A stretch of 64,000 nucleotides of DNA from Basidiobolus meristosporus CBS 931.73 (GCA_002104905.1 MCFE01000283.1:39449-103448), one strand, 5' to 3'; shown: positions 25,147-53,357, numbered from the stretch's first letter. Notes: generated from the sequence alone by a model not told the origin. Made by a program: numbers and translations.

Positions 25147-25229
25147 ATGTTGTTGTGAACCGTTGCTCCTTTCAAAGAAAATGCTGTAGTGAATCACTGC
25201 TCTTTTCACAGAAAATAGCAAATAATATG

Positions 25230-25600
25230 GGTAATTAAGTGCAGTCGTCGGTACATTCAGTGTCACTACAGGATAAGTATACTTCGAGTCCTGATTAGCA
25301 CAATCATCGCCACATAGGATAAGGGCTCCCTTCAACTTCCGGTGTGGAGTAGATCTCCTCTTGTGCGGGCTGAATCATAATAATGGGGTAATCAGAGTGT
25401 TCAGCCCCCTTCAGTTTGGCGTACTCAGATGCACTGGCTGAACCTTCTACTTCGAGGTTGGGCCTGCTTGAAGTTAACACTAAGACTTTTGTCACTAATG
25501 GTGCTAATAGTGTTCAGATAGCCATGCTTTCTGGTCACGGTGGTGAACACTTGACGCAACGTTGGTACTTGGTCAAAGACAGAACCCTAAATATAGCTCA
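25230..25600 (-). pseudogene. Family A' remnant (unit 0)
   Basis: Translates to pieces such as RPNLEVEGSASASEYAKLKGAEHSDYPIIMIQPAQEEIYSTP. No intact start. Confidence 0.8.
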
Positions 25601-26055
25601 GTATACTATCGAATGATGGCAGTAAAGATATTAATTCATCCGTAATCCCACAAAGTAACTACAGGCTTCTTTATCACGAGAGTAGCTTAGCATTCTACGG
25701 CAATGGAATTAAGAACTACGTAAGAACGACGCCATTCCTGTGTGCTCACCTCAAGCCATAGTATGAATCATTGTGGTTTATCTCTTCACAACCGCAAATG
25801 CCATTCCAAAGTGGAATTGAAGAGAAATGTTTATTTACTTTTCTTCATGTACTGAAGTGATTGGTCGCCTGGATTACGGTGTTAATCAACACCTATTCAC
25901 TGATCATTGCAATGAAAGTGAAACGCTGATTAACTTTACTCACCTTTGCTGCATAGTTTAGTAAACTGGGTTTGGTTGCTGATGATCGCTGATGAATCTA
26001 GCAAAGCATACATAAAAGCAACTGTTTGCCTTCCAGTGTGTCATCAAGAGCCAAC

Positions 26056-26457
26056 ATGCAACGCACTTTACGCATTCTATCCGCCTTTGTATTCCTATTC
26101 GGTGTATCTTATGCATCGCCCATTGCAACGTATGACAACCAGCAAGTAGACCAGGATCCGTGGACTTCGACAGTGAACCATTAATGCCATATACACTCAA
26201 CATACTATCAACTAGAGTCTCCAGACGCCTATCCATTGTTGGACAACGCTCAGACTAATTCTGCACAGAATGCTGAGGCACTTTCCAACCAGAATCAATA
26301 TGAGCAAGTGCAGCAAGTAGATCAGACATTGTACCAACCATCTGCGTCGACATATGCGCCATCATTTACTCCCGATGAGGATGACACTCAAGACTCGAGT
26401 GACGACGACAATCAGCCATCGTGTAAACGTAGACGTGGATACAGAGGCGGCTTTTGA
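26056..26457 (+). pseudogene. Family C copy 1, two compensating frameshifts with an internal TAA (or assembly error)
   Basis: MQRTLRILSAFVFLFGVSYASP... start. Small deletions at ~26150-26175 relative to the other copies. Frame restored by ~26200. Confidence 0.8.
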
Positions 26458-27050
26458 TGAAATCGGATCGTGTAAACACTAGTTTGGCATTCATAATAAT
26501 CCTATCAAATAATTGCTATTTCTGCAAGCTATCAAACGCACATTTCTTCTGCAAGCAAGATTATACCAACTGACATCAGGAAGAAATAGCGGAGACGTGA
26601 CCACAGGGATGAGTGGAATGAGGATCAACAGAAACAATCAAGTATAGATAGGAATACGCAGCACTCTTCTGTCAGCCATATATGTTCAGAGCATCATGAT
26701 AGAGAACAATAATGAACATTCAATAGGTACCAGCATTCTGGTAACGACTCCTCACATGATAGTGTGAATCATTTTGGTTTCTATAAATGGTTAAATTACT
26801 AAAATGGAATGTGGTGAGTAGTTGTGGTGAGCAACAGATGGATGATGATATAAGCAATGTAGATCGATGGCACATAGGTTCAATTGGCTGTGCATTGTTT
26901 TTATCCTAATTTTTGTCCTTTGATGATTGGCCACATAGAATAGCTATCAACATAGGATTAGCTTCACTCAACTGAGCTTCGATTGCTGATGATCGTTGAT
27001 AAATCTTGTCCATCAAACATAAAGCAACTGTTTACATTACAGTGTGTAAC

Positions 27051-27408
27051 ATGCAACGTAATTTCCGCATCTTATCCACCTTAGTATTCCTATTCGGTGT
27101 ATCCTGTGCATCGCCCATTGCTACATATGGTAGCCAACAAGTAGACCTAGGTGTCCCGGTGGACTATGGGGACTGAACCATCGATGCCATATGCACCGAC
27201 TGACTACCAGCTGGAGTCCCCAGTCACCTATCCCTTGTTGGTCAATGTTCAAACTGATTCCGCACTAAATGCTCAGGCACTTTCCAACCATCTACGTCAA
27301 CATATGTGCAATCATTTACCCCAGGCGAGGATGAGATCCAAGACTCAAGTGACGACGACGATCAGCCATCGTGTACACCGTAGTGGTAGATACAGAGACA
27401 GCTATTGA
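27051..27408 (+). pseudogene. Family C' (core-deleted paralog), unit 0
   Basis: MQRNFRILSTLVFLFGVSCASP start, extra G at ~27168, 49-nt deletion at 27284-27290, ends RYRDSY*. Confidence 0.8.
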
Positions 27409-28071
27409 TAAGAATAGGTTTAATACCATTGTGATCCCAGTATAATAAATAAGAAAATGTATTGTAAAATCGACATCACTCTAGTTTCCCTATTGATGTA
27501 AGCTATCAAATGCACGCAATTCTTCCGCGAACCAGTTTCTGACAATAAACACCAGGAAAAAGCCACAAAAGAGACATGACCAAAGGGATGGGTGGAACAA
27601 CGGCGAGTATCGGCAGAGATTGAGGTAAGGGAAAGAGCCGAACAAGCACCAATTTTCAAAATTACAATAAGAATGCATATTAGTTATGTGCTGGTAATGG
27701 TAGTGAGCAATAGTTAGGATTTCGTATTTTATCGCTCTGCTGGTGTTCATTGCTAAATTCACTCGGGAACATATAGCATGGGAACCATTATCACATGGTT
27801 ACAACATTGATGGTAGCAATAGTTCATTAACTTTGATGAACTCACACTTTATCAGATTGAAAAGCAGCATTCGCTCTACCATCATCGGCTCAATCGCATT
27901 GATATCGCGTAGTTTATATGGTTACAGCACGATAAATACACTGATAAATACACCAATGTATACCTAATATATACACATATGCTTTTGATATTTCAGCTGT
28001 AGTGTGGTAATTCACGGATTACGGCTGATGATGTTTCATATTAATATTAGGTAGCCTAATGATATATTTAT

Positions 28072-28447
28072 TTAATCAATGTATCGATTCCCACTGAAAT
28101 ATCTGATCTTGAAGTACTTATATGCAGACCTCTTGTACTTCTTCTGGCCTCCACCGTAGCCACGGGTGGCTGGCTGAGTGATGATGATCTGGGGCTGTTG
28201 CTGCTTAGGCTGATAGAGGGTTTGGTTGATAACCTGCGCTTGGTCAAACTGATTAGAGTTCGACAGGGCATCAGCATCACTGAACGAGTGAACGTTCACT
28301 CTGTCCAACAATGCCTTTCTGGGTTGCATGTCGGCTACATTGAAGTTTGGCATGTTGTAGGATGACTCTGGCTGAGTTGAAGTGTCATCCATTGAGTCCT
28401 CACCTTCGCCCTCATTCTCATCCATATAGTGATCACCCTCGTCCTGT
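28072..28447 (-). pseudogene. Family B, 5'-truncated (signal peptide lost)
   Basis: The C-terminal 117 codons are intact. Upstream it is joined at ~28447 to the C-promoter region. Confidence 0.85.
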
Positions 28448-28715
28448 CATACCAAAGTGGTATAGCACGCCCAGAATTGAAGAGAAATGTTGATTTATTT
28501 TTCTTGATGTGCTGAAGTGATTGGTCGCTTGAATTACGGTGTTAATCAACTCTTACTCACTGATCATTGCAATGAAAGTGAAATGCTGATTAACTTTACT
28601 CACCTTTGCTTCATAATTTAGTAAACTGGGTTTGGTTGCTGATGATCGTTGATGGATCTAGCAAACCATACATAAAAGCAACTGTTTGCCTTCCAGTGTG
28701 TCATCAAGAGCCAAC

Positions 28716-29150
28716 ATGCAACGCACTTTCCACATTCTATCCGTTTTAGTATTCCTATTCGGTGCATCTTATGCATCGCCCATTGCAACGTATGACAACC
28801 AGCAAGTAGATCAGGGCATCCCGGTGGATTTTGGTGACAATGCCGACAATGATCCATTGATGTCATACACACCAACATACTATCAACTAGAGTCTCCAGA
28901 CACCTATCCATTGTTGGACAACGCTCAGACTAATTCTGCACAGAACGCTGAGGCACTTTCCAACCAGAATCAATTTGAGCAAGTGCAGCAAGTAGATCAG
29001 ACATTGTACCAACCATCTGCACCGACATATGTGCAATCAAATACTCCCGACGAGGATGACACTGAAGACTCGAGTGACGACGACAATCAGCCATCGTGCA
29101 AACGTTGTCAACGACGCTACCGTAGACGTGGATACAGAGGCAGCTCTTGA
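28716..29150 (+). CDS. Family C secreted protein, 144 aa
   Basis: Signal peptide MQRTFHILSVLVFLFGASYA, core ALSNQNQFEQVQQVDQTLYQP, acidic block DEDDTEDSSDDD, tail CKRCQRRYRRRGYRGSS. The true ATG is 30 nt downstream of the ORF-track TTG. Confidence 0.85.
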   Translation: MQRTFHILSVLVFLFGASYASPIATYDNQQVDQGIPVDFGDNADNDPLMSYTPTYYQLESPDTYPLLDNAQTNSAQNAEALSNQNQFEQVQQVDQTLYQPSAPTYVQSNTPDEDDTEDSSDDDNQPSCKRCQRRYRRRGYRGSS

Positions 29151-29636
29151 TTCAATCAGATCATGTAAACACTAGTTTGGCATTCATAATAAATCCCATC
29201 ATATAATCGCTATTTCTGCAAGCTATAAAACACACACATTTCTTCTGCAAACAAGATTATAACAACTGATATCCGGAAGAAACAGCGGAGACGTGACCAC
29301 TGGGATGAGTGGAATGAGCATCATGAACATTCTGGCAATGAACCCTTAAACAATAGTGTGAATCATTTTGGTTTTGTACCCTCCAATTTGCGAGCAATAT
29401 TGAACAAACTACTAAAATGAAATAGTGGTGAGCAATCGTGGATAGCAATAAATGGATGATGGTATAGCTAATGAAATACGTAGATCGATGATACATGAGT
29501 TAAATTGGCTGTGGATTGTTTTTATTGATGATTGGCCACCTAGAATAGCTATCAACTTAGCTGAGCTTCGGCCGCTGATGATTGTTGATAAAACAAAAGC
29601 AACTTTTTGTATTCCAGTGTGTAACTAAGTGCCAAT

Positions 29637-29950
29637 ATGCAACGTAATTTCCGCATTTTATTCACCTTGGTATTCCTATTTGGTGTATCCTGTGCATCGC
29701 CTATTGTTACATATGGCAACCAATAAGTAGACCAGGGTGTCCAAGTGGACTATGAGACTGAACCATCGATTCCATATGCACCGACAGATTGTCAGCTAGA
29801 GTTCCCAGTCACCTATCGTTGTTGGACAATGTTTAAACTAACTCCGCACAGAATGCTCAGGCACTTTCCAACCATCTACGTCGACATATGTGTAACCATT
29901 TACTCCCGACGAGGATGAAGACCAAGACTTGAGTGACGATGACGGTCAGC
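29637..29950 (+). pseudogene. Family C' pseudogene, unit 1
   Basis: Premature TAA after NQ, the same 49-nt core deletion, 3' end deleted. Confidence 0.8.
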
Positions 29951-30262
29951 CACACTCTAGGATGTCCGATCTCCATATTGACTAAGCCCTTGTTGAGCTT
30001 ATTAAATGAGCCACCCACTACCTCCAAGCAGGACTTAAAGACGTGCATAGCCGAGCTTTACCAGTTTCTTACCCCTCTCCTGAATTGGTGGCTGGACTTC
30101 GGGTCATCAGAGGGAAGTATGGAGATTGGCGTGGTGTTGAGTTTGTCAAACGCTCTTGTTCCCATATTTCGTAATGGCTATATCTCTGCAATCACATATG
30201 AGACGAAAAATAAAATGAATAATGTAACTTTATTGGATTTGGACTTAAGTGCAGTCTTTGGT

Positions 30263-30841
30263 TCATTGAGTGTCTTCCATGGGCTCAGTATACTGTGAGT
30301 TCTGATTAGCACAGTCATCGACACATTGAACATCCTCCATGGGCTCAGTGTACTGTGCATCTTGGTTAGAGCATCCTTCAGCGCATTGGGTGTCCACTAC
30401 TGGTGTGGAGTATGTCTCATCTTGTGCTGGCTGAATTATAACAGTGGGGTAATTGGTGCCATCTTCTGAGTGTTCAGCATCCTTCTGTTTGGCGTACTCG
30501 GATGCGCTGGCTGAGCCTTCTACTTCGAGACTAGGGCCTGCTTGAAACTGAACATCGAGACTCTTGTCACTGTTGGCGTTGGCAGTGTTCAGATTGTCAT
30601 GCTTTCTGGTCACGGTGGTGAACACCTGACGCAACAATGGCACTTGGACGTTTGGCGTTTCAACAGTGGGCTGAACCTGGACTTGCTGGTAGCAGTTGCT
30701 TGCTTGGTCTGAGCATGAATACCTGCGATAACGGACTCTTCTATGCTCACGGTTGCATGATTCGGAGCATGGGACTGGAGCAGCAACGGCGGCTTGAAGA
30801 GAGGCAAGGCCCAAAATCAATGATACAATGAATGCACGCAT
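30263..30841 (-). CDS. Family A secreted protein, 192 aa
   Basis: Signal peptide MRAFIVSLILGLASLQAAVA, Cys/Arg N-terminal block, conserved core, two 20-aa C-terminal repeats QCxxxCxxQxxQYTEPMEDx. Confidence 0.85.
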   Translation of the reverse strand: MRAFIVSLILGLASLQAAVAAPVPCSESCNREHRRVRYRRYSCSDQASNCYQQVQVQPTVETPNVQVPLLRQVFTTVTRKHDNLNTANANSDKSLDVQFQAGPSLEVEGSASASEYAKQKDAEHSEDGTNYPTVIIQPAQDETYSTPVVDTQCAEGCSNQDAQYTEPMEDVQCVDDCANQNSQYTEPMEDTQ

Positions 30842-30882
30842 CTTTGAGAACTACTGAGTTCATTGCCAAGTACACTCGGGAA

Positions 30883-30896
30883 TATATAGCATGGGA
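30883..30896 (-). promoter_or_regulatory. Family A core promoter TCCCATGCTATATA (TATA element)
   Basis: Identical 14-mer starting 42 nt from the ATG in all five intact A genes (30883, 35395, 38450, 42700, 54368). Confidence 0.7.
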
Positions 30897-31176
30897 ACCA
30901 GTATAACATGGTTACAACGTTGATGGTAGCAATAGTTAGTTAACTTGGATGAACTCACACTTTGTCAGATTGAAAATTAGCATTCGCTCTACCATCATCG
31001 GCTCAATCGCATTGATATCGCGTAGATTATATGGTTACAGCACGATAAATACACTGATAAATACACCAATATATACGCATATGCTTTTGACAAAATTTCA
31101 GCTTTGGTGTGGTAATTCACGAAGCACGGCTGATGATGTTTCATATTAATATAAGGTGGCCAAATGAAATGTTTAT

Positions 31177-31731
31177 TTAATCAATGTATCGATTCCCACT
31201 GAAATATCTGATCTTGAAGAACTTATGTGCCGACCTCTTGTACTTCTTCTGGCCTCCACCATAGCCACGGGTGACTGGCTGAGTGATAATGATCCGGGGC
31301 TGTTGCTGCTTAGGCTGATAGAGGGTTTGGTCGATAACCTGCGCTTGGTCAAACTGATTAGAGTTCGACAGAGCATCAGCATCACTGGATGAGTGAGCGT
31401 TCACTCTGTCCAACAAGGCCTGTCTTGGTTGCATATCGGCTATATTGAAGTTGGGCATGTTGTAGGATGACTCTGGCTGAGTTGTAGTGCCATCCATTGA
31501 GTCCGCACCTTCGCCTTCATCTTCGCCCTCATTCTCATCCATATAGCTATCACCCTCATCCTGTTCCGGCTGATAGTCATATGCAGGCGATTGAGTTTCT
31601 TGGTAGCAAGGACTTATTTGCTCCCCGCACAAGTTGTTCTCGTTGCTAACCTGAGAAGAGGTATCTTCTGTGGCGGGTAATGCATGGATAGATGCAAAGT
31701 GCAGAGCGAACAAAGCGAGAGTAAGCTGCAT
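31177..31731 (-). CDS. Family B secreted protein, 184 aa
   Basis: Signal peptide MQLTLALFALHFASIHA, CGEQISPC, long D/E block, core ALSNSNQFDQAQVIDQTLYQP, tail KKYKRSAHKFFKIRYFSGNRYID. TATAAA 36 nt upstream. Confidence 0.85.
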   Translation of the reverse strand: MQLTLALFALHFASIHALPATEDTSSQVSNENNLCGEQISPCYQETQSPAYDYQPEQDEGDSYMDENEGEDEGEGADSMDGTTTQPESSYNMPNFNIADMQPRQALLDRVNAHSSSDADALSNSNQFDQAQVIDQTLYQPKQQQPRIIITQPVTRGYGGGQKKYKRSAHKFFKIRYFSGNRYID

Positions 31732-31909
31732 TTTGATGAATAGCGTAAAACTAGTCGTAAGCTCACTTTATAGTGGTATTTGGCGTAGTCTATTATACTG
31801 CATCCTATATCTGACTCACTTGAAGCCATGAATTCACATGCCATGTCCAGCCGTGGTTGACTTTCCACTAAGTACTTGTGAAGATATGGGCTCATATGGA
31901 TAATCGAGA

Positions 31910-32075
31910 TTTATTGAATTAAGTGCAGTTATCGGTACATTAAGTGTCCTCCATAAAGTCTGCAGTCGGTGAGTCCTGCTAAGCACAATCATTACAACAC
32001 TGAGCATATTCCGTGGGCTCAGTGTATTGAAGCAGCAACGACGGCCAAAAGAAAAAGTAGCTACGTCATTGAGCA
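31910..32075 (-). pseudogene. Family A' remnant (unit 2), internally deleted
   Basis: The 3' repeat region is joined directly to signal-peptide-like sequence. Confidence 0.65.
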
Positions 32076-32783
32076 TTTGGAAAGCCATATGTTAATAGTC
32101 GCAGTGATAAATTCACATTAATACCCTAAGCAACCACTATTCCTATGAATCTACAATTTGAAATCAACGCAAATCTAGGTTCATGTATCGACTTGAAGTT
32201 CATCTGCGGCGTTAGAGATCCCTTGGATAGAGGCGCTGTATCATCTTGTGGTGGTTGATGCAATGCTTGATGCTAAATCGTTAATCTAGCTCAGTATGCT
32301 ACCGAATGATGACTGGTAAAATATGAATTCATTCATAATCCCATAATACGCATTAAAATAGCTACAGGTCGCTATATAACCCGAGCAGGTTACAATTCTA
32401 CGACTATGAAATCAAGAACTACGTAAGAACGAAGCCATTCCTGTGTGCTCACCTCAAGCCATAGCTTGAAAAGGCGTAGTATGAGTCATTTTGGTTTGTC
32501 TCTTCACAACTGCTAATGTCATTCCCAAATCGTGCGGCAGCGCAGAATTGAAGAATGTTTATTTATTTTTCTTCATGTACTGAAGTGATTGGTCGCCGGA
32601 ATTACGGTGTTAATCAGCACCTATTCACTGATCATTACAATGAAAGTGAAATGCTGATTAACTTTACTCACCTTTGCTTCATAATTTAGTAAGCTGGGTT
32701 TGGTAGCTGATGATCGCTGATGAATCTAGCAAACCATACATAAAAGCAACTGTTTGCCTTCCACTGCGTCATCAAGAGCCAAC

Positions 32784-33236
32784 ATGCAACGCACTTTCCG
32801 CATTCTATCCGCCTCGGTATTCCTATTCGGTGTATCTTCTGCGTCGCCCATTACAACGTATGACAACCAGCAAATAGAACAGTATCCGTACTTCGACCAG
32901 GGTATCCAAGCGGACTTTGGTGGCAACACCGACAATGAACCGTCAATGTCATACACTCCAACATACTATCAACTAGAGTCCCCAAACGCCTATCCATTGC
33001 TAGACAACGCTCAGACGAATTCCGCACAGAACGCTCAGGCACTTTCCAACCAGAATCAGTACGACCAGGTGCAGCAAGTAGATCAGACATTGTACCAACC
33101 ATCTGCACCGACATATATGCAATCAATTACTCCCGACGAGGATGACACTGAAGACTCGAGTGACGACGACGATCAGCCATCGTGTAAACGTTGTCAACGA
33201 CGCTACCGTAGACGTGGATACAGCGGCCGCTTTTGA
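32784..33236 (+). CDS. Family C secreted protein, 150 aa (6-aa insertion IEQYPYF region)
   Basis: Intact ORF with the same architecture as 28716-29150. Tail CKRCQRRYRRRGYSGRF. Confidence 0.85.
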   Translation: MQRTFRILSASVFLFGVSSASPITTYDNQQIEQYPYFDQGIQADFGGNTDNEPSMSYTPTYYQLESPNAYPLLDNAQTNSAQNAQALSNQNQYDQVQQVDQTLYQPSAPTYMQSITPDEDDTEDSSDDDDQPSCKRCQRRYRRRGYSGRF

Positions 33237-33662
33237 TTCAATCGGGTCATGATAACACTAGTTTGGCATTCAAAATAAATCCTATAAAATAATCGCTACT
33301 TCTGTAAGCTATCCAACACACACATTACACCAACTGACATCAGAGGAGACGTGACCACAGGGATGTGTGGAATGAGCAATGCCTCCTCACATGAAACATT
33401 TTGGTTTAGTACCCTCCAATTTGCGAGCAATATTGAATAAACTAAAATGGAATAATGGCAAGCAGTCGTGGTGAGCAATAAATGGATGATGGTATAGGTA
33501 ATGAAATACGTAGATCGATGATACATAGGCTCAATTGGCTGTGGATTGTTTTTATTGATGATTGGCCGCATAGAATAGCTATCAACTGAGCTTCGGCTGC
33601 TGATGATTGTTGATAAAAACAAAAGCAACTTTTTGTATTCCAGTATGTAACTAAGTGCCAAT

Positions 33663-34025
33663 ATGCGACGTAATTTCCGAATTTTATCCACGCATTTTGT
33701 CCACATTGGTATTTCTATTCGGTGTATCCTATGCATTGCCCATTGCTACATATGGCAATCAATAAGTAAACCAGAGTGTCCAAGTGGACTATGAGACTGA
33801 ATAATCGATGCCATATGCGCCGGCAGGTTACCAGCTGGAGTCCCCGATCACCTATCCCTAGTTGAACAATGTTGAAACTAATTCCGTACAGAATGCTCGG
33901 GCACTTTCCAACCATCTACGTCGACATTTGTACAATCATTTACCCCAGACGAGGATGAAAACCAAGACTTGGGTAACCACGATGATCAGCCATCGTGTAG
34001 ACGTAGATACAGAGACTGCTATTGA
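33663..34025 (+). pseudogene. Family C' pseudogene, unit 2
   Basis: Frameshifted signal region and the same 49-nt core deletion. Confidence 0.8.
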
Positions 34026-34774
34026 TGAGAACAGGTTGTTGGTATTTCTACATTTTATTACTTACATGTAATCGATGTCACACCAGTTTCCCTATTTATG
34101 TAGACTATCAAGTACACACAATTATTGTGTAAATAAGCTTTCAAATATGAACACTGGAAAAAAAGATACATAAGAGATGTGCCCACAGGGATGGGTGGAA
34201 CAAGGGCGAGTATCAACAGAGATCGAAGTAAGGGAAAGAGCCGATCAAGCACCAATTTTCTCAATTACAATAAGAATCATTTGTCTGTAGTGCATATTAG
34301 TTATGTGCTGGTAATGGTAGTAAGCAATAGTTGGGCTTTGGTATTTTCTCACTCTGCTGGTACCAGTGAGTATAAGTCAAAAGCACCTGACTATTGGATT
34401 TGACACACACCGAATTCTCCTTATTTATCATGTATCCTACCCTCTATAATAGCGGACTCATGTTAGAACTTCTTGGAATGGTGATATGCTCAAGGAGACC
34501 CGATTTCCATATTGACTAAACCCACATAAAACCTATTGAATAAGCTACCCATGACCTTCAAGCAGTACTTCAAGACGTTTCTTACCCTTTTCCTGGATTG
34601 GTCACTGGACTTCGGGTTATCAGAGGGAAATGCGGAAATTGGCATGGTGTTGAGTTAGTAAAATACCCTTATTTTCTTGATGGTAACGGCTATATTTCTG
34701 CTATCCCATACGAGGCGAAAAATAACATGAATAATGAAATTTTATTGGATTTGGGCTCAAGTGCAGTCGTTGGT

Positions 34775-35353
34775 TCATTGAGTGTCTTCCATGGGCTCAG
34801 TATACTGTGGGTCCTGATTAGCACAGTTATCACCACATTGAACATCTACCATGGGCTCAGTGTACTGTGTATCTTGGTCAGAGCATCCTTCGATGCATTG
34901 GGTGTCCACTACTGGTGTGGAGTATGTCTCATCTTCTGCAGGCTGAATTATAACAGTAGGGTAGTCAGAGCCATCGTCTGAGTGCTCAGCACCCTTCTGT
35001 TTGGCATACTCGGATGCGCTGGCTGAACCTTCTACTTCGAGGCTAGGGCCTGCTTGAAACTGAACATCGAGACTCTTGTCACTGTTGGCGTTGGCAGTGT
35101 TCAGATTGTCATGCTTTCTGGTCACGGTGGTGAACACCTGACGCAACAGTGGCACTTGAACGTTTGACGTTTCAACAGTGGGCTGAACCTGGGATTGCTG
35201 GTAGCAGTTGCTTTCTTGGTCCGAGCATGAATACCTGCGATAACGGACTCTTCTATGCTCACGGTTGCATGATTCGGAGCATGGGACTGGAGCAGCAACG
35301 GCGGCTTGAAGAGAGGTAAGGCCCAAGATCAATGAAACAATGAATGCACGCAT
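34775..35353 (-). CDS. Family A secreted protein, 192 aa
   Basis: Intact paralog of 30263-30841. Confidence 0.85.
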   Translation of the reverse strand: MRAFIVSLILGLTSLQAAVAAPVPCSESCNREHRRVRYRRYSCSDQESNCYQQSQVQPTVETSNVQVPLLRQVFTTVTRKHDNLNTANANSDKSLDVQFQAGPSLEVEGSASASEYAKQKGAEHSDDGSDYPTVIIQPAEDETYSTPVVDTQCIEGCSDQDTQYTEPMVDVQCGDNCANQDPQYTEPMEDTQ

Positions 35354-35639
35354 CTTTGAGAACTACTGAGTTCATTGCTGAATTCACTCTGGAATATATA
35401 GCATGGGAGCCAGTATAATATGGTTTTAACATTGATGGCAGCAATAGTTAGTTAACTTTGATCAGATTGAAAATTTGCATTCTGTCTACCATCATCGCGT
35501 AGTTTGCATGATTACAGGAGGATAAATACACTGATAAATACACCAATAAATGCACATATGCTTTTGATATTCCAGCTGTAGTATAGTGATTTACGAATCA
35601 ATGCTGATGTTTCATTTTAATATAAGGTGGTCAAGTGAA

Positions 35640-36060
35640 ATGATGTTCATTGTGTCTATTTCCACTATAATATCCGAGCCGATCTCTTGTATTCCTTTCA
35701 GTATCTTGATCAGCGCATCCTTCAACGCATTGGGTGTCTACTACTGGTGTAGTGTATGTCTCATCTTGTGCAGGCTAAGTCACAACAATGGGAAATTAGA
35801 GTCATCGTCTGATTGCTCAGCACTCTTCAGTTTGGCGTACTCGGATGCGCTGGCTGAACCTTCTACTTCGAGGCTAGGGCCAGCTTGGTATTAAGACTCT
35901 TTTCCCTATCAGCGTTAGCAGTGCTCAGATTGCCATGTTTTTTGGTAACAGTGGTGAACACTTGACATAATAATGGCACTTGGACATTCGACGTTTCAAC
36001 AGTATGCAGAACTTGGACTTGCTGTTAACAGTCACTTGCTCGGTCGGGGCATTAGAAACT
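35640..36060 (-). pseudogene. Tiny family B 3' remnant (~35640-35692) fused to a family A' pseudogene (~35692-36060)
   Basis: B-like 3' end sequence is followed directly by A-like core sequence with stops. No start codon. Confidence 0.7.
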
Positions 36061-36757
36061 AGCAGTTGAAGTGCTGTGATAAATACACATTAATACCCTT
36101 AACAATCACTATTCTTACGGCTCTTCAGTTTCAGATCAACACAACTCGAAGATTCGTCTGCTACACTGGAAGATCACTTGGACAGAGGTGATGGTGAGTC
36201 ACATTTTTGCTAAGCTAAGCTGATTGGTGCAATGCATAATGCTACATCGTAAATTCAACTCAGTATACTATCGACTGAAGGCTGGTGAAGATATTAATTC
36301 AGTCATGATCCCATAACACTCACAAAGATTGTTACAGGTTGTTATATAACCAGAGTAGCCTAGCGTTCTACGACTATGAAATCAAGAACTACGTAAGAAT
36401 GAAGCCATTCCTGTGTGCTCACTTCAAGCCATAGCTTGAAAAGGCGTAGTATGAGTCATTTTGGCGAGTCCCTTCGCTACCGTGTTTGTCATTCCAAAGT
36501 GGTATGCCAAGCCCAGAATTGAAGACGAATGTTTATTTATTTTTCTTGATGTACTGAAGTGATTGGTCGCTTGGATTACGGTGTTAATCAGCTTTTACTC
36601 ATCGATCATTACAATGAAAATGAAATGCTGATTAACTTTACTCACCTTTGCTTCATAATTTAGTAAACTGGGTTTGGTTGCTGATGATCGCTGATGAATC
36701 TAGCAAACTATACATAAAAGAAACTGTTTGCCTTCCAGTGTGTCATCAAGAGCCAAC

Positions 36758-37192
36758 ATGCAACGCACTTTCCGCATTCTATCCGCCTTAGTATTCCTAT
36801 TCGGTGTATCTTATGCATCGCCCATTACAACGTACGGCAACCAGCAAATAGACCAGGGCATCCCAGTGGACTTTGGTGGCAACACCGACAATGAACCATC
36901 AATGTCATACACTCCAACATACTATCAACTAGAGTCCCCAAACGCCTATCCATTGTTGGACAATGTGAAGACGAATTCCGCACAGAACGCTCAGGCACTT
37001 TCCAACCAGAATCAGTACGACCAGGTGCAGCAAGTAGATCAAACATTGTACCAACCATCTGCGCCGACATTTGTGCAATCGTTTACTCCCGACGAGGATG
37101 ACGCTGAAGACTCGAGTGACGACGACGATCAGCCATCGTGTAAACGTTGTCAACGACGCTACCGTAGACGTAGATACAGAGACAGCTATTGA
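36758..37192 (+). CDS. Family C secreted protein, 144 aa, C/C' chimera at the 3' end
   Basis: Intact C core, but the ending RYRDSY* and the downstream flank match C' copies. Confidence 0.85.
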   Translation: MQRTFRILSALVFLFGVSYASPITTYGNQQIDQGIPVDFGGNTDNEPSMSYTPTYYQLESPNAYPLLDNVKTNSAQNAQALSNQNQYDQVQQVDQTLYQPSAPTFVQSFTPDEDDAEDSSDDDDQPSCKRCQRRYRRRRYRDSY

Positions 37193-37829
37193 TATGAATA
37201 GGTTTAATAAATAAGATAATGCAATATATAACCGACATCACTCCATCTTCCGACAATTAACACTAGGAAAAAATCACAAAAGAGACATGACCACAGGGAT
37301 AGGTGGAACAATGGCGAGTATCAACAGATGTTGAAGTAAGGGAAAGAGCCGATCAAGCACCAATTTTCACAATTACAATAAGAATGCATATTAGTTATGT
37401 GCTGGTAATGGTAGTGAGCAATAATTGGGCTTTGGTATTTCCTCACTCTGCTGATACCAATAAGTATGAGTCAAAAGTTCCAGATTATTGGATTTGACAC
37501 GCTCCGAGTTCTCCTTACATTATCATGTATTCTACCCTCTATAATAGCTGACTCTAGCTTGGAATGGCGATACACTCAAGGAGACCCGATTTGCATATTG
37601 ACTAAACCCATAAAAAACTTATTGAATAAGCTACCCATTACCTTCCAGCAGTACTTCAAGACGTTTCTTACCCTTCTCCTGGATTAGTCGCTGGACTTTG
37701 GGTCATCAGTTTGTCAAATACCCTTGTTTTCATGATGGTAACGACTATATTTCTGTTATCACGTAAAAGGCGAAAAACAAAATGAATAATGGAACTTTAT
37801 TGGATTTATGCTCAAGTGCAGTCGCTGGG

Positions 37830-38408
37830 TCATTGAGTGTCTTCCATGGACTCAGTATACTGTGAGTCCTGATTATCACAGTTGTCGCCACATTGAACAT
37901 CTTCCATGGGCTCAGAGTACTGTGTATCTTGGTCAGAGCATCCTTCGATGCATTGGGTGTCCACTACTGGTGTGGAGTATGTCTCATCTTGTGCAGGCTG
38001 AATTATAACAGTGGGGTAACCAGAGCCATCTTCGGAGTGCTCAGCACCCTTCTGTTTGGCATACTCTGATGCGCTGGCTGAACCTTCTACATCGAGGCTA
38101 GGGCCTGCCTGAAACTGAGCATCGAGACTCTTGTCACTGTTGGTGTTGGCAGTGTTCAGATTGTCATGCTTTCTGGTCACGGTGGTGAACACCTGACGCA
38201 ACAATGGCACTTGGACGTTTGGCGTTTCAACAGTGGGCTGAACCTGGACTTGCTGGTAGCAGTCGCTCGCTTGGTCCGAGCATGAATACCTGCGATAACG
38301 GACTCTTCTATGCTCACGGTTGCATGATTCAGAGCATGGGACTGGAGCAGCAACGGCGGCTTGAAGAGAGGCAAGGCCCAAGATCAAGGATACAATGAAT
38401 GTACGCAT
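37830..38408 (-). CDS. Family A secreted protein, 192 aa
   Basis: Intact paralog. Confidence 0.85.
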   Translation of the reverse strand: MRTFIVSLILGLASLQAAVAAPVPCSESCNREHRRVRYRRYSCSDQASDCYQQVQVQPTVETPNVQVPLLRQVFTTVTRKHDNLNTANTNSDKSLDAQFQAGPSLDVEGSASASEYAKQKGAEHSEDGSGYPTVIIQPAQDETYSTPVVDTQCIEGCSDQDTQYSEPMEDVQCGDNCDNQDSQYTESMEDTQ

Positions 38409-38740
38409 CTGTAAGAACTACTGAGTTCATTGCCAAGTACACTCGGGAATATATAGCATGGGAACCAGTATAACATGGTTACAACGTTGATGGTAGCAAT
38501 AGTTAGTTAACTTGGATGAACTCACACTTTGTCAGATTGAAAATTAGCATTCGCTCTACCATCATCGGCTCAATCGCATTGATATCGCGTACTTTATTTG
38601 GTTACAGCACGATAAATACACTGATAAATACACCAATATATACGCATATGCTTTTGATATTTCAGCAGTAGTGTGGTAATTCACGAACCACAGCTGATGA
38701 TGTTTCATATCAATATTAGGTGACCAAATGAAATGTTTAT

Positions 38741-39295
38741 TTATTCAATGTATCGATTCCCACTGAAATATCTGATCTTGAAGTACTTATGTGCCGACCT
38801 CTTGTACTTCTTCTGGCCTCCACCATAGCTACGGGTGGCTGGCTGAGTGATAATGATCTGAGGCTGTTGCTGCTTAGGCTGATAGAGGGTTTGGTCGATA
38901 ACCTGCGCTTGGTCAAACTGATCAGAGTTCGACAGAGCATCAGCATCACTGGATGAATGAGCGTTCACTCTGTCCAACAAGGCCTGTCTTGGTTGCAGGT
39001 CGGCTATATTGAAGTTGGGCATCTCGTAGGATGATTCTGGCTGAGTTGTAGTGCCATCCATTGAGTCCACACCTTCGCCTTCATCTTCACCCCCATTCTC
39101 ATCCATATAGTGATCACCCTCGTCCTGTTCCGGCTGATAGTCATCTGCAGGTGATTGAGTTTCTGGGTAGCAAGGACTTACTTGCTCCCCGCACAAATTG
39201 TCACCGTAGCTCACCTGAGAAGAGGTATCTTCTGTGGCAGGGAATGCATGGATATAAGCAAAGTACAAAGCGAGTAAAGTGAGAGTAAGCTGCAT
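38741..39295 (-). CDS. Family B secreted protein, 184 aa
   Basis: Intact paralog of 31177-31731. Confidence 0.85.
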   Translation of the reverse strand: MQLTLTLLALYFAYIHAFPATEDTSSQVSYGDNLCGEQVSPCYPETQSPADDYQPEQDEGDHYMDENGGEDEGEGVDSMDGTTTQPESSYEMPNFNIADLQPRQALLDRVNAHSSSDADALSNSDQFDQAQVIDQTLYQPKQQQPQIIITQPATRSYGGGQKKYKRSAHKYFKIRYFSGNRYIE

Positions 39296-39489
39296 TTTGA
39301 TGAATATCGTAAAACCAGTCGTAAGCTCACTTTATAGTGGTATTTGACATAGTCTACTATACTACACCCTGTATCAGACTCACTTGAGGCCAGGAATTCA
39401 CATGCTATGTCCTGCTTTTGTTGCCCATCAACTAACTACCTGGTTTAGCTATTAGCAATCAAGTTAGATTGGCGTTAAGAGCAAATGAT

Positions 39490-39815
39490 ATGGATAATCG
39501 AGATTTATTGAATTAAGTGCAGTTGTCGGTACGTTGAGTGTCGTCCATAAAGTCAGCATACAGTAAGTCCTGATTAGCACAGTCATTGCCAAACTGAGCA
39601 ACTTCCATGGGCTCAGTGTTTTGTATATCCTGATCAACGCATCCTTCAACGTACAATCGTACTTGGGCATTCGAAGTCTCTACAGTTGGCAGAACTCGGG
39701 CCTGCTGGTGGCAGTTACTTGCTCAATCGGAGCATGACGAACTACGATAATGATTTGGAGCGTGGAATTGGAGCAACAACGATGGCCAAAAGAAAAAGTA
39801 GCTACATCATTGAAG
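39490..39815 (-). pseudogene. Family A' remnant (unit 4)
   Basis: MM*LLFLLAIVVAPIP... start with stops and a large internal deletion. Confidence 0.65.
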
Positions 39816-40519
39816 ATTTGGAAAGCCACATGCTGATAGTCATAGTGATAGGTACACATTAATACCCTTAGCGATCACTATCCCTATGAATCTACGATCT
39901 CAAATCAACGCAACTCTAGGTTCATCTGCTGCAATAGAGATCGCTTGGATAGAGGTGATATATGAAGCCAGCAAAGTGATGGCGAGTTACATTTTTGCTA
40001 AGCGGACTTGAGGTGGTCGAAGCAATGCATAATGCTAAATCGTAAATATAGTTCAGTATACTATCGACTGATGGCCGGTGAAGATGTTAATTCGTTCATA
40101 ATCCCAACATACTCATAAAAATAGCTGCAGGGTACTATATAATCAGAGTAGCTTAGTAGCCTTCGACGATGAAATCGAGAACTACGCAAGAACGACGCGA
40201 TTCCTGTGTGCTCACCTCAAGCCATAGCTTGAAAAGGCGTAGTATGAGTCATTTTAGTTTGTCCCTTCCAAAGTGGTAGAGCAAGCCCAGAATTGAAGAC
40301 GAATGTTTATTTATTTTTCTTGATGTACTGAAGTGATTGGTCGCCGGGATTACGGTGTTAATCAACACCTATTCACTGATCATTGCAATGAAAGTGAAAT
40401 GCTGATTAACTTTACTCACCTTTGCTTCATAATTTAGTAAACTGGGTTTGGTTGCTGATGATCGCTGATGAATCTAGCAAAGCAACTGTTTGCCTTCCAG
40501 TGTGTCATCAGGAGCCAAC

Positions 40520-40954
40520 ATGCAACGCACTTTCCGCATTCTATCCGCCTTAGTATTCCTATTCGGTGTATCTTATGCATCACCCATTGCAACATATGAC
40601 AACCAGCAAGTAAGCCAGGGTATCCCAGTGGACTTTGGCGGCAATGCCGACAATGAACCATTAGTGTCATATGCACCAACATACTATCAACTAGAGTCCC
40701 CGAACGCCTATCCATTGTTGGACAACGCTCAGACTCATTCTGCACAGAACGCTCAGGCACTTTCCAACCAGAATCAATTTGAGCAAGTGCAGCAAGTAGA
40801 TCAGACATTATACCAACCATCTGCACCGACATATGTACAATCAATTACTCCCGACGAGGATGATACTCAAGACTCGAGTGACGACGACGATCAGCCATCG
40901 TGCAAACGTTGTCAACGACGCTACCGTAGAAGTAGATACAGCGGCCGCTTTTGA
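40520..40954 (+). CDS. Family C secreted protein, 144 aa
   Basis: Intact ORF. Tail CKRCQRRYRRSRYSGRF. Confidence 0.85.
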   Translation: MQRTFRILSALVFLFGVSYASPIATYDNQQVSQGIPVDFGGNADNEPLVSYAPTYYQLESPNAYPLLDNAQTHSAQNAQALSNQNQFEQVQQVDQTLYQPSAPTYVQSITPDEDDTQDSSDDDDQPSCKRCQRRYRRSRYSGRF

Positions 40955-41403
40955 CTCAATCGGATCATGTAAACATTGGTTTGGCATTCATAATAAATCC
41001 TGTCATATAATCGCTATTTGTGCATGCTATAAAACACGCACATTTCTTCTGCAAATAAGATTATAACAACTGATATCCGGAAGAAACAGCGGAGATGTGA
41101 CTACAGGGATGAGTGGAATGAGCATCAACCGAAATAACCAAACATAGATATGGATACGCAGTGCCTTTCGGTCAGGCATATTCGACGTTAAAACCTTTAT
41201 GCTCAGAACATCTGACAACTCCTCACATGACAATGTGAATTATTTTGGTTGTGTCCCCTCTGAATTGCGAATAATAACGAATAAGTTACTAAAATGGAAT
41301 AGTGGTGAGTAGTCGTGGATTGTTTGATGATTGGCCGCATAGAATAGCTTTTAACATAGGATTGATTTAACTCAAGTTAGTTCAATAATATAGTAAACTA
41401 AAC

Positions 41404-41515
41404 TTTGTATTCCTATTCAGTGTATCCTATGCATCACCCATTGCTACATATGGTAACCAACAAGTAGGCCCCAGTGGACTTTGGTGGCAGCACTGTGACT
41501 GAACCATCGATGTCA
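41404..41515 (+). pseudogene. Family C' fragment, unit 4
   Basis: Signal/N-terminal region only, truncated at ATCGATG. Confidence 0.65.
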
Positions 41516-42079
41516 CACCAGTTTCCCTATTCATGTAAGCTATCAAGTACACACAGTTCTTCTGTAAGCAAGCTTTCAAATATGGACACTAGGAAAAAAA
41601 GATACATAAGAGATGTGCCCACAGGGATGGGTGGAACAAACGAGTATCAACAGAGATCGAAGTAAGGGAAAGAGCCGATCAAGCGCTAATTTTCTTAATT
41701 ATAATTAGTGGTGCATATTATATGTGCACTCAGGATACCATGTTTTCTGGTAATGGTAGTGAGCAGTAGTTGGACTTTTTGAGATAGCGATACACTCTAG
41801 GATGCCCGATCTCCATATTGACTAAGCCCTCGTTGAGCATATCAAATAAGCCTCTCACTACCTTCAAGCAGTACTTCAAGACGTTTCTTACCCTTCTCCT
41901 GAATTGGTGACTGGACTTCGGATCATCAGAATGAAGTGTGGAAATTGGCTTGGTTTTTGGTTTGTCAAACGCTCTTTGCTCCCATGCTGTTAATGGCTAT
42001 ATTTCTGCTCACATATGAGGCGAAAAATAAAATGAATAATGGAACTTTATTGCATTTGGGCTCAAGTGCAGTCGTTGGG

Positions 42080-42658
42080 TCATTGAGTGTCTTCCATGGG
42101 CTCAGTATACTGTGGGTCCTGATTAGCACAGTTATCGCCACATTGAACATCTTCCATGGGCTCAGTGTACTGTGTATCTTGGTCAGAGCATCCTTCGATG
42201 CATTGGGTGTCCACTACTGGTGTGGAGTATGTCTCATCTTGCGCAGGCTGAACCATAACAATGGGGTAACCAGAGCCATCTTCGGAGTGTTCAGCACCCT
42301 TCTGTTTGGCGTACTCGGATGCGCTGGCTGAGCCTTCTACTTCGAGGCTAGGACCTGCTTGAAACTGAGCATTGAGACTCTTGTCACTGTTGGCGTTGGC
42401 AGTGTTCAGATTGTCATGCTTTCTGGTCACGGTGGTGAACACCTGACGCAACAATGGCACTTGGACGTTTGACGTTTCAACAGTGGGCTGAACCTGGACT
42501 TGCTGGTAGCAGTTGCTTTCTTGGTCCGAGCATGAATACCTGCGATAACGGACTCTTCTATGCTCACGGTTGCATGATTCGGAGCATGGGACTGGAGCAG
42601 CAACGGCGGCTTGAAGAGAGGCAAGGCCCAAGATCAAGGATACAATGAATGCACGCAT
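42080..42658 (-). CDS. Family A secreted protein, 192 aa
   Basis: Intact paralog. Confidence 0.85.
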   Translation of the reverse strand: MRAFIVSLILGLASLQAAVAAPVPCSESCNREHRRVRYRRYSCSDQESNCYQQVQVQPTVETSNVQVPLLRQVFTTVTRKHDNLNTANANSDKSLNAQFQAGPSLEVEGSASASEYAKQKGAEHSEDGSGYPIVMVQPAQDETYSTPVVDTQCIEGCSDQDTQYTEPMEDVQCGDNCANQDPQYTEPMEDTQ

Positions 42659-43006
42659 CTTTGAGAACTACTGAGTTCATTGCCAAGTACACTTGGGAAT
42701 ATATAGCATGGGAACCATTATAACATGGTTACAACGCTGATCGTAGCAATAGTTAGTTAACTTTGATGAACTCACACTTTATCAGATTGAAAATTAGCAT
42801 TCGCTCTGCCATCATCGGCTGAATCGCATTGATATCGCGTACTTTATTTGGTTACAACACGATAAATACACTGATAAATACACCAATATATACCCTAATA
42901 TATACACATATGCTTTTGATATTTCAGCAGTAGTGTGGTAATTCACGAATCACGGCTGATGATGTTTCATATTAATCTAAGGTGGCCAAATGTCATATTT
43001 ATTTAT

Positions 43007-43350
43007 TCAATGTATCTGTTCTTGAAGTACTTATGCGCAGATCTCTTGTACTTCTGGCGTCCAACATGGCTACGGGTGGCTGGCTGGGTGATGACGATCT
43101 AAGGGCTGTTGCTGCTCAGGCTGATAGAGGGTTCGGTCGATAACCTGCGCTTGGTCAAACTGATTGGAGTTCGACAGAGCATCAGCACCACTGGATGAGT
43201 GAGCGTTCACTCTGTCCAACAAGGCCTGTCTTGGTTGCCTATCGACTATATTGCAGTTTGGCATGTTGTAGGATGACTCTGGCTGAGCTGAAGTGTCTTC
43301 TATCGAGTCCTCACCTTCGCCTCCATCTTTGCCCTCATTCACATCCTTAT
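43007..43350 (-). pseudogene. Family B pseudogene, 5'-truncated and frameshifted
   Basis: The core ALSNSNQFDQAQVIDRTLYQP is present. Signal peptide missing, tail frameshifted. Confidence 0.8.
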
Positions 43351-44214
43351 AGTTGTGATAATTTTATGATGAATACACATTGATACCCTTGGCTATCACT
43401 ACTCTTATGGCTCTATAATTTCAACTCAACACAACCCCCGGTTAATGCTCCGACTTGAAGACTTATCTGGTGCAATAGAGGTCAATTGGGTAGAGGCGAT
43501 GTATGAAGTGATGGAGAGTTGCATTTTTGCTAAACCCACCTAAGGTGGTTGATGCAATGCATCGTAAATCTGGCTCAGTATACTATCGGCTGATGGCTGG
43601 TGAAGATATCCCAAAACACTCACAAAGATTGCTACAGGTTGCTATATAACCAGATTAGCTTAGCATTCTAAAACTATGAAATCAAGAACTACGTAAGACC
43701 GAAGCCATTCCTGTGTGCTCACCTCAAGCCATAGCTTGAAGAGGCGTAGTATGAGTTATTTTAGTTTGTCCCTTCCAAAGTGGTATAGCAAGATCAAAAT
43801 TGAAGAGGATTGTTTATTTATTTTTCTTGATGTCATAATAAATCCCATCACAAAATCGCTATATCTGTAGGCTATCCAACACATACAAACAAGATTACAC
43901 CAACTGATATCAGGAAGAAACAGCGTAGGACAAGCAATAAGAATACTTCTGTCAGGCATATTAGACGTCAAAACCTAATCATGGACATTCATGTAAACAC
44001 TCCCATGATTCATTTTCGTTTTGTTCCCACAAAATTACGAATAATAACAGATAAACTACTAAAATGGAATGGTGGTGAGCTATCGTGGTGAGCTATCGTG
44101 GTGAGCAATAGATGGAAGATTGTTGAGGCAATGAAGAACGTGGATCAATTGGCTGTGGATTGCTTGATGATTGGGCACCTCGAATAGCTATCAACATAGG
44201 ACTCAACTGTCATC

Positions 44215-44502
44215 AATTTCCGCCTCTTTTCTAATCACTTCATCCTATTCGGTGTGTATTTTGCCACACCCATAGCTACACATGACAACCAATAAGTAGA
44301 CCATGGGACTGAACCATCGATGCCATCCCTGGTTGGACAATGTTTAAACTAACTCCGCACAGAATGCTCAGGCACTTTCCAACCATCTACGCTGACATAT
44401 GTGCAATCATTTACTCCCGACAAGGATGAAAACCAAGACTCGATTGAAGATGACGATCAGACATCATGTTACCGTAGACGTAGATACAGAGACAGCTAAT
44501 GA
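44215..44502 (+). pseudogene. Family C' pseudogene, unit 5
   Basis: The same 49-nt core deletion plus further deletions and stops. Confidence 0.75.
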
Positions 44503-44859
44503 TATGAACAGGCCTAATACTATTGTGATCCCACTACAATAAATAGGTTCATGGATCATGTAGTCATTACTACTCCTATTCATGTAAGCAATTAGCAAGT
44601 AGAGCAGTCTCCGTACAATGCCATATATGCCGAAATTCTGGAGTCCATCGCTTCACAGCTCTCAGGAACTTGACCAGATATTGTATCAACTATCTGCGCC
44701 AGCTGACTTATCCATTTTGGCTACTCAGAAAGGTACTACTGGCTGATATTGCGGGACTGCTTTATTCTGCTCTAACCTTACTCTTGTTCCTGTGCTGGCA
44801 TGGATCATACTTCTGCTATTACATATTAAGCAAGCAATATATAATCAACGCAAATCTAA

Positions 44860-45110
44860 TGGCTTTAAGGTCATTCCACAGACTCAATATAGTGCTCATT
44901 TTGTTTAGCACACTCATTGCCATATTGGGCATCTTCCATGGGCTCTGTGAACTGTGTATCTTGGTTAGAGCATCCATCAATATAACAGGTGTCTTCATCT
45001 GCTATGGAGTATGTCCTATATTGCACAGGCTGATCCATAACAATGAGGAAATATTTGTCATACCTGGATGAACTGTCTTTACCTTCTTACTCAGGCCAGG
45101 GCATGCCTGG
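44860..45110 (-). pseudogene. Heavily eroded family A remnant at the array edge
   Basis: Aligns to 42100-42370, but the CpG positions are converted. Confidence 0.7.
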
Positions 45111-51929: not shown

Positions 51930-52376
51930 TCCTCAGTTTAGGTTGATTTATCTGTTGGGGGGAATTGTCTCTGCCAAGGGGTTGTGTATTGTACGACTTG
52001 AGTGGACTGCGTCAGAACGTAGCGATATGAAGAGCTATTATCTGGATTTTCGCTCCCTTTTGCTTGGCATATTCCAGCGCGTTGGCCCCACCCTCCAGGT
52101 CGAGAATGGGTCCTGCTTGATACTTGACATTGAAGCCTTTATTGCTGTTGGCATTAGCAATGTTCAGGTTATTGTGGTTTCTGGTCACGGTGGTCAAACC
52201 TGGCACAATAGCGGGGATTGAACATTGGACGACTTAACAACGTTTTGGTAGCAATCATTCGCATACTGTACACATGGTAAACTGCGATAATGAACCCTTC
52301 CATACTCGCGAGTGCATGGAGAGTAACCGCTGATTGCGGCAAGGTCTAGAATCACTGCTACGGTAATAAAGCGCAT
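51930..52376 (-). pseudogene. Family A pseudogene, closest to 53829-54326
   Basis: MRFITVAVILDLAA... with a deletion at the signal-peptide end. Frameshift near 52200. The core NLNIANANSNKGFNVKYQAGP...EYAKQKGA is retained. Confidence 0.8.
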
Positions 52377-53009: not shown

Positions 53010-53357
53010 TTGAGTAGACACTCCTCTACGGCCTTTATATTCGTAATTATACCTTCTTGGTTTATAAGTCACACAACATGCAACTTTAATATTAATCACG
53101 TTTGGGATTTAAACAGTCTAGTTCATCCGGTATAAAGTAGTACTTTTCTTGGATTGGATTCATTACTAAGCCATATCTCTTACATTTGTGCATCGATAAC
53201 AACAGTGTCTTGAACGACCATTACTCACTACTCAGTATCATCTAGACAATTACGACAAAACAATAGGTAAAGATACTTTATGATGCTTGCTTCGAGTGAT
53301 GGTAGTACTTCAAGAATATTTCCTTTTAAACCCTTTCGTAAGGTCTAAGTACAAGCT

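Follow-up and report, generated by a model that had tools for sequence, protein, structure and literature searches.

What kind of genes make up the tandem array between 25.2 and 45.1 kb of a 64-kb stretch of the Basidiobolus meristosporus CBS 931.73 genome, and what could so many related copies be good for? The stretch (MCFE01000283.1:39449-103448, assembly GCA_002104905.1) is called the window here, and all positions are counted over its whole length. An earlier note on this DNA had described three families of secreted proteins, named A, B and C, which are amplified together as a unit and were suggested to be functionally tied to each other. Our follow-up identifies the intact copies as genes under purifying selection. 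Judged by sequence and profile comparisons, A, B and C do not represent independent families but belong to one two-core superfamily, from which they would derive through the loss of modules; as far as public data show, this superfamily is confined to the genus Basidiobolus. Regarding their function, an abundant extracellular material whose parts co-assemble appears as the most likely reading, which we hold tentatively and weigh below against precursors of cationic peptides, effectors and functionless repeats.

Intact and decayed genes in a tandem array

The list of open reading frames (ORFs), self-BLASTN and TBLASTN consistently resolved the array into six, partly incomplete copies of a unit of approximately 4 kb. 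In the self-BLASTN, repeats with 83-92% identical DNA recur at intervals of roughly 3.7-4 kb between 25.6 and 45 kb, and TBLASTN with one member per family as query returned the unit order A'(-)/C(+)/C'(+)/A(-)/B(-). Four A genes of 192 amino acids (aa), four C genes of 144-150 aa counted from the ATG and two B genes of 184 aa are intact, exactly the inventory of six units that had been claimed before. Stops, frame changes or truncation were found in all A' and all C' copies, in two B, in two C and in one A copy. The members of the array are:

25267..25571, minus strand: A' pseudogene fragment of unit 1 (TBLASTN pieces corresponding to A residues 66-188, in several frames)
26056..26427, plus strand: C pseudogene of unit 1 (TBLASTN, 74% to C, one stop)
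27051..27374, plus strand: C' pseudogene of unit 1 (TBLASTN, 45% to C, three stops)
28072..28446, minus strand: 5'-truncated B copy with residues 57-184 only (ORF, TBLASTN; annotated as a 117-aa model)
28716..29150, plus strand: C1, intact, 144 aa (ORF, TBLASTN, dN/dS, annotated gene)
29637..29875, plus strand: C' pseudogene of unit 2 (TBLASTN)
30263..30841, minus strand: A1, intact, 192 aa (ORF, dN/dS; TATATAT at -47)
31177..31731, minus strand: B1, intact, 184 aa (ORF, dN/dS; TATAAA at -41)
31943..32029, minus strand: A' fragment of unit 3 (TBLASTN)
32784..33236, plus strand: C2, intact, 150 aa (ORF, TBLASTN, dN/dS, annotated gene)
33691..34029, plus strand: C' pseudogene of unit 3 with three stops (TBLASTN)
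34775..35353, minus strand: A2, intact, 192 aa (ORF, TBLASTN, dN/dS)
35697..36057, minus strand: A' pseudogene of unit 4 (TBLASTN)
36758..37192, plus strand: C3 (= P0057), intact, 144 aa (ORF, dN/dS, annotated gene)
37830..38408, minus strand: A3, intact, 192 aa (ORF, dN/dS; merged with B2 in GenBank)
38741..39295, minus strand: B2, intact, 184 aa (ORF, dN/dS)
39534..39764, minus strand: A' pseudogene of unit 5 (TBLASTN)
40520..40954, plus strand: C4, intact, 144 aa (ORF, dN/dS)
41404..41518, plus strand: C' fragment of unit 5 (TBLASTN)
42080..42658, minus strand: A4, intact, 192 aa (ORF, dN/dS)
43009..43354, minus strand: B pseudogene of unit 5 with a stop and a frame change (TBLASTN)
44218..44469, plus strand: C pseudogene of unit 6 (TBLASTN)
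44874..45101, minus strand: A pseudogene of unit 6, at the array end (TBLASTN)

The ratio of nonsynonymous to synonymous substitution rates (dN/dS) in pairwise comparisons among the intact paralogues ranges from 0.24 to 0.47 and all bootstrap 95% intervals stay below 1, which indicates coding beyond chance and marks the intact A, B and C copies as genes under purifying selection. In GenBank they are filed as hypothetical proteins with single-exon models; the lengths of these models equal those of the ORFs, hence the genes are regarded as intronless. The model ORX92321.1 (302 aa, 37830-39295, minus strand), in which A3 and B2 are wrongly joined via a predicted intron, was noticed besides. The N-termini of A, B and C resemble signal peptides when read by eye rather than with a predictor, i.e. 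a hydrophobic stretch leads to small residues in front of the presumed cleavage site, and two relatives carry the UniRef label "Secreted protein". Upstream of the ATG we found TATATAT at a distance of 47 nucleotides in A and TATAAA at 41 nucleotides in B, and upstream of C only CATAAAA. Hence, from the initial description as intronless genes with signal peptides and TATA boxes, the lack of introns is backed by the GenBank lengths and the signal peptides by our reading of the N-termini, but the TATA boxes apply to A and B and not to C.

One two-core superfamily instead of three families

B and C have a core of 38 residues in common, ALLD..(H)S....ALSN.NQ(F/Y)(D/E)Q.Q..DQTLYQP, which was aligned by hhalign with 98% probability (E 2e-14) and confirms the shared B/C motif seen at first inspection. 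A and B agree in the signal peptide and the following CX6C-Y-Q loop (hhalign 80%, E 1e-5). Between A and C, only a short basic stretch with Cys, Arg and Tyr was found, and a wider relation is not supported by hhalign (probability 1.6%).

The connection between all three became apparent from Basidiobolus ranarum. Its proteins P0055, P0140 and P0142 consist of a signal peptide, the CX6C loop, an A core, a variable spacer rich in Met, Glu and His, a B core, the motif IIP and a basic tail of the B type. P0027, P0146 and P0151 combine an A core with a downstream half of the C type, in which both the acidic run and the Cys/Arg-rich tail are present. Profile comparison assigned the N-terminal halves of P0142 and P0146 to the A profile (98.8% and 99%, respectively) and the C-terminal half of P0146 to the C profile (98.4%). 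P0055 and P0027 can be taken as single exons and not as merged models, because their gene spans equal the ORF lengths. In B. meristosporus, the apparent count of fused proteins is inflated by the merged models P0014, P0007, P0047, P0081 and P0082.

Therefore, the view of three separate families has to be given up in favor of one superfamily, given the common B/C core, the A/B loop and the fusions in B. ranarum. Its fullest form, which is kept by the single exons of B. ranarum, comprises signal peptide, CX6C loop, A core, variable spacer, B/C core and basic aromatic tail. Proteins of the A-only and the B-only type still share their N-terminus, which makes duplication followed by complementary core loss the simplest history. 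Accordingly worded, a two-core gene would have been duplicated and each copy would then have lost the complementary core, a direction of change that we infer from Basidiobolus sequences only: A would have retained the A core, while B would have retained the N-terminus, the B/C core and the tail. C would represent the C-terminal half of the A-C type, placed behind a signal peptide that is dissimilar to that of A or B. The suggested functional tie among the families gains support from these comparisons, since B. ranarum has single exons in which an A core and a half of either the B or the C type are united.

Some members deserve a separate remark. P0055 (B. ranarum JASJQH010007255.1, 3770-4735) is a single copy outside arrays and resides among housekeeping genes; its neighbors encode an RNA 3'-phosphate cyclase, a histidine phosphatase and a tRNA intron endonuclease. 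This locus may represent the ancestral setting of the superfamily. In P0140, P0141 and P0139 the cores are separated by repeat spacers that are Met-rich (MEMPTMEKT, MDMDMNM) or His/Lys-rich (EKPKKHHTW), and P0139 contains three B cores within one model.

Linkage and older copies

The same array with the same pseudogene pattern is present on two other scaffolds of the genome, MCFE01000512 and MCFE01000112, and both are collinear with the array in the window at 93-95% identity. This identity between scaffolds is higher than that between the units in the window; therefore, whole arrays were duplicated after the amplification of the unit. The C<->B->A unit would thus have been amplified in tandem first, and complete arrays would later have been copied onto other scaffolds. 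An older triad with the order C<->B->A is found on MCFE01000731, with protein identities of 52%, 70% and 73%. Hence, within B. meristosporus the order is kept in recent copies (85-95% DNA identity) as well as in old ones (52-73% protein identity). Downstream of the array, the window contains older members as well:

52048..52376, minus strand: A-like pseudogene fragment (self-BLASTN, TBLASTN)
53829..54326, minus strand: A gene of an older subtype, 165 aa, 57% identical to the array A (cluster of P0010, 23 members on many scaffolds)
54679..55224, minus strand: B gene of an older subtype, 181 aa from the first or 174 aa from the second ATG, 56% identical to the array B (cluster of P0037, 22 members)
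53252..56889, no strand assigned: repeated segment of 3.65 kb with the older A-B pair; a segment of MCFE01000731 matches it at 96% identity

The diverged A-B pair reported at 53.8-55.2 kb is therefore real, with the same order and strand as in the array, and its subtype occurs on at least 15 scaffolds. The further claim, that the genes remain linked through old and recent duplications, holds within B. meristosporus, as the collinear arrays and the older triad demonstrate, but fails in B. ranarum, where A and B are located in separate single-family arrays. Hence, the mixed cassette is an arrangement of B. meristosporus that is not conserved in its relative.

The abundance of decayed and dispersed copies makes it necessary to consider that the array consists of functionless repeats or of cargo of mobile elements, in which ORFs are simply kept through recent copying. 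Many copies are indeed pseudogenes, retrotransposons and a DDE transposase are found within the same window, and the older A-B pair resides in a discrete segment of 3.65 kb that is repeated on many scaffolds. However, dN/dS is clearly below 1, and signal peptides, cores and tails are retained across a divergence of 40-50% between the two Basidiobolus species. Furthermore, no terminal direct or inverted repeats were found around the 3.65-kb segment, which is why its carriage by a mobile element was rejected. Altogether, we regard this explanation as very improbable.

Relatives and known families

No known domain had been recognized in the proteins, and our searches agree. The Pfam scan of A, B and C gave nothing above threshold, with only composition-driven matches below it (ProSAAS, Myticin prepro), and the A and B profiles found nothing among the PDB sequences at E <= 1. 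In the ESM Atlas feature search with B1 and the fused P0142, the best scores of 0.78-0.80 correspond to chance level and the neighbors, low-complexity secreted proteins of arthropods, are a lead at best. Among 1.84 billion cluster representatives, the B-family profile matched 31, all from B. meristosporus or B. ranarum except one, a low-complexity repeat protein of bacterial origin. Likewise, the relatives found by word-based searches for all three proteins came from Basidiobolus only. Accordingly, the superfamily is considered as genus-restricted within these data.

Several more specific assignments were examined. The automatic UniRef names CBM1, SCP, C2H2 and glucanase carbohydrate-binding domain were rejected, because no model match stands behind them. 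For CBM1, the name given to some A paralogues, A matched no Pfam family at E <= 1 and relatives of A had no precomputed Pfam match. The eight Cys residues of A are arranged in CX3C and CX6C pairs without CC, which differs from the hydrophobin pattern C-CC-C-C-CC-C, and a Pfam match is lacking here as well. The lineage of Basidiobolus is not known to possess hydrophobins. Repeated peptides flanked by dibasic sites, as in Kex2-processed repeat proteins (KEP; PMC7329392), were not found in A, B and C.

Protein features

The mature proteins are acidic, with isoelectric points of 4.2-4.4 and net charges between -9 and -15, and they are rich in Gln, Asn, Asp, Glu, Ser, Thr and Tyr. In A, the signal peptide is followed by a CX3C motif, a basic loop, a CX6C motif, the conserved A core (PLLRQVFTTVTRKHDNLNTANA...QAGPSLE.EG) and an acidic tail with two further CX3C motifs (C153-x3-C157-x16-C174-x3-C178); individual A paralogues have between one and three CX3C motifs. 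B consists of signal peptide, CX6C loop, acidic spacer, the B/C core (ALLD..ALSNSNQFDQAQVIDQTLYQP), the motif IIITQP and a basic tail with Tyr and Phe. B has one Cys pair of the CX6C type and C one CXXC. In B and C, an acidic block directly precedes the cationic aromatic block at the C-terminus, a layout that is not seen in A. Correspondingly, positive and negative charges are segregated in B and C to a degree (kappa z 4.7-7.4) that was reached by none of 1000 shuffles. Hence, the initial characterization of the proteins as Q/N/D/E/Y-rich with paired Cys was correct, and that of separated charge blocks applies to B and C but, according to the shuffles, not to A.

The AlphaFold2 predictions with family alignments gave a mean predicted local distance difference test score (pLDDT) of 39 for A and 53 for B and no secondary structure beyond the signal peptide; A and B are thus modelled as disordered. 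Between B. meristosporus and B. ranarum, the cores and the B tail hardly change, and the spacers differ in length and sequence. The dibasic site in front of the B tail is KR in B. meristosporus and KK in B. ranarum, and more dibasic sites are located within the tail.

The Cys pattern in the A tail, C-x3-C-x16-C-x3-C, resembles the CX3C-Xn-CX3C framework of the plant alpha-hairpinins. Unlike those, the A tail is acidic and the CX3C number varies among paralogues. A membership of A in this family was rejected, given the variable CX3C count and a tail model without helix, although this model is weak (pLDDT 34-37).

Effectors, peptide precursors or extracellular material

What could be the function of such proteins? 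The superfamily agrees in many aspects with small-secreted-protein clusters of other fungi. The proteins of 144-192 aa fall below 300 aa, have a signal-like N-terminus as judged by eye, are domainless and have a narrow taxonomic range, and their genes stand in tandem next to transposons. The secreted-protein clusters of Ustilago maydis are an example of such lineage-specific clusters of candidate effectors. In contrast to these clusters, the Basidiobolus genes would encode complementary halves of one ancestral protein and are co-amplified as a fixed mixed unit, and the copies are near-identical, stay under purifying selection and have no known link to infection. Hence, we infer that the split and the co-amplification represent an unusual feature within an otherwise familiar kind of cluster.

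Along these lines, A, B and C might be effectors directed to a host or partner, i.e. disordered proteins whose short cores mimic or bind molecules of hosts or insects and which expanded in an arms race. Small, predicted to be secreted, domainless, lineage-restricted and clustered is the operational definition of a candidate effector, and the secretomes of zygomycetes are rich in lineage-specific small secreted proteins (PMC9391592). However, the paralogues experience purifying and not diversifying selection and their cores are invariant; the presence of near-identical copies by the dozen points to dosage and not to variety, and B. meristosporus lives mainly as gut commensal and saprobe. In our opinion, these features make an effector function quite unlikely.

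The main competitor of an extracellular material is the assumption that the proteins are precursors of cationic peptides with antimicrobial or signalling function, which we consider doubtful, yet the most serious of the alternatives. According to this model, the acidic front would shield a cationic part, namely the conserved Arg/Lys/Tyr/Phe tail in B and C or the disulfide-framed basic loop in A, up to its release by a protease after export; gut bacteria, competitors or the fungus itself would be the targets, and the amplification would serve the dose. The acidic block immediately before the strongly basic aromatic tail in B and C, the near invariance of the B tail between the species and the dibasic sites (KR, RR) before or inside the tails fit well to such precursors, as does the life of Basidiobolus among gut bacteria (PMC7466969). 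Moreover, the sequence of signal peptide, acidic stretch and cationic aromatic C-terminal stretch in B and C is reminiscent of antimicrobial prepropeptides such as the alpha-defensin precursors. But, in contrast to those, a single conserved processing site is not evident: the site before the B tail differs between the two species, and cutting at the inner dibasic sites would fragment the tail. Conservation is highest in the uncharged cores, which would be needless in a mere propiece, so that the usual pattern of a conserved propiece and a variable mature peptide is reversed. Furthermore, A has neither this layout nor a C-terminal cationic peptide, and the overall charge is not balanced but strongly negative.

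The reading we favor, abundant extracellular material with co-assembling parts, is derived from a pattern of features: predicted export, disorder, near-invariant cores and tail with free spacers, variable terminal Cys pairs and dozens of near-identical copies under selection. That so many copies are kept under purifying selection, and that A and B have promoters of the TATA type, suggests a need for much product. Such proteins would act outside the cell, at the surface of hyphae or spores, or in an adhesive or matrix. The short invariant cores would be the stickers, held apart by variable acidic stretches in the role of spacers; the Arg/Lys/Tyr blocks would find partners in the acidic blocks, and cross-links could form through the terminal Cys pairs in A. 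The A-type and B/C-type halves are expected to cooperate in trans as they would in cis within the fused proteins. Joint action of the halves is to be expected, as the split genes stay neighbors and amplify together and fused forms persist in the sister species. A bolder version, which we rate as rather unlikely, states that the split halves of the ancestral two-core protein co-assemble via their cores, blocks of opposite charge and Cys/Tyr cross-links into an undescribed bulk material. If this applies, the proteins would be candidates for a coat of spores or hyphae or for the glue of adhesive conidia, i.e. a new class of fungal extracellular material, and the dosage of the subunits would be set through co-amplification of the mixed gene cassette.

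Precedents for such materials exist in animals. The vertebrate casein cluster of secretory calcium-binding phosphoproteins (SCPP) also contains tandem related genes for secreted, acidic and disordered proteins, which originated from duplication and module loss. The casein/SCPP proteins are produced in large amounts and associate with one another. They are not related in sequence to the Basidiobolus proteins, for which co-assembly is a proposal derived from the features above. The proteins of sandcastle-worm cement and the mussel foot proteins are likewise secreted, disordered and Tyr-rich, have blocks of opposite charge and Cys, and are encoded by multigene families, a likeness that fits to the coacervate idea put forward in the earlier note. 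The marine adhesives depend on 3,4-dihydroxyphenylalanine (DOPA) and phosphoserine. Again, a sequence relation is missing, and modifying enzymes are not known for the Basidiobolus proteins.

Several observations weigh against an extracellular material. A wall-anchoring signal was not found; a glycosylphosphatidylinositol anchor is unlikely because the C-termini are hydrophilic. The AlphaFold2 models of A and B have neither a beta-rich nor another assembly-prone fold; they are free of strands, whereby monomer models cannot exclude amyloid fibres. The charge segregation of A does not differ significantly from shuffles (z 1.4), and the acidic-front/cationic-tail layout of B and C suits peptide precursors equally well. 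Moreover, five A genes stand in a row on one contig of B. ranarum and nine B genes on another, so that linked partners cannot generally be assumed to occur in equal dosage. The predicted complex of the A core (residues 55-130) with the B core plus tail (residues 95-184) obtained a score of 0.00 in a calculation that left alignments unused, and it weighs neither for nor against binding. Our literature search on adhesive conidia yielded no molecular data. RNA sequencing of B. meristosporus has been reported (PMC7466969).

Generally, the secretomes of zygomycete fungi contain hundreds of small proteins without an assigned role, and the coats and glues of their spores are molecularly uncharted. 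The superfamily genes make up a sizeable, hitherto ignored share of the Basidiobolus secretome. If the proteins are structural, they would represent a new fungal extracellular material; if they release peptides, they would provide a fungal example of charge-masked precursors.

Surroundings of the array

Directly upstream of the array, but outside the cassette, a 341-aa ORF (24121-25146, plus strand) was found, which has no Pfam match and no signal peptide. A retrotransposon of the Ty3/gypsy type is located at 17087-20775 on the minus strand, with ORFs for gag, protease, reverse transcriptase/RNase H and integrase according to Pfam. The repeats at 16342-16866 and 21418-21958, which are 91% identical, are probably its long terminal repeats. 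An ORF at 1194-2003 (minus strand) encodes a transposase domain of the Harbinger/PIF-like type (DDE_Tnp_4); near to it, the segment 1856-4296 is repeated at 9258-11727 with 94-96% identity. Toward the other end of the window, the direct repeat 56479-56841/57457-57796 (88-94% identical) holds an ORF of 79-81 aa, and its first copy lies inside the 3.65-kb segment with the older A-B pair. Finally, a repeat of about 400 bp occurs in three copies (58553, 59814 and 61088), which are 93-95% identical and together span 58553-61484.

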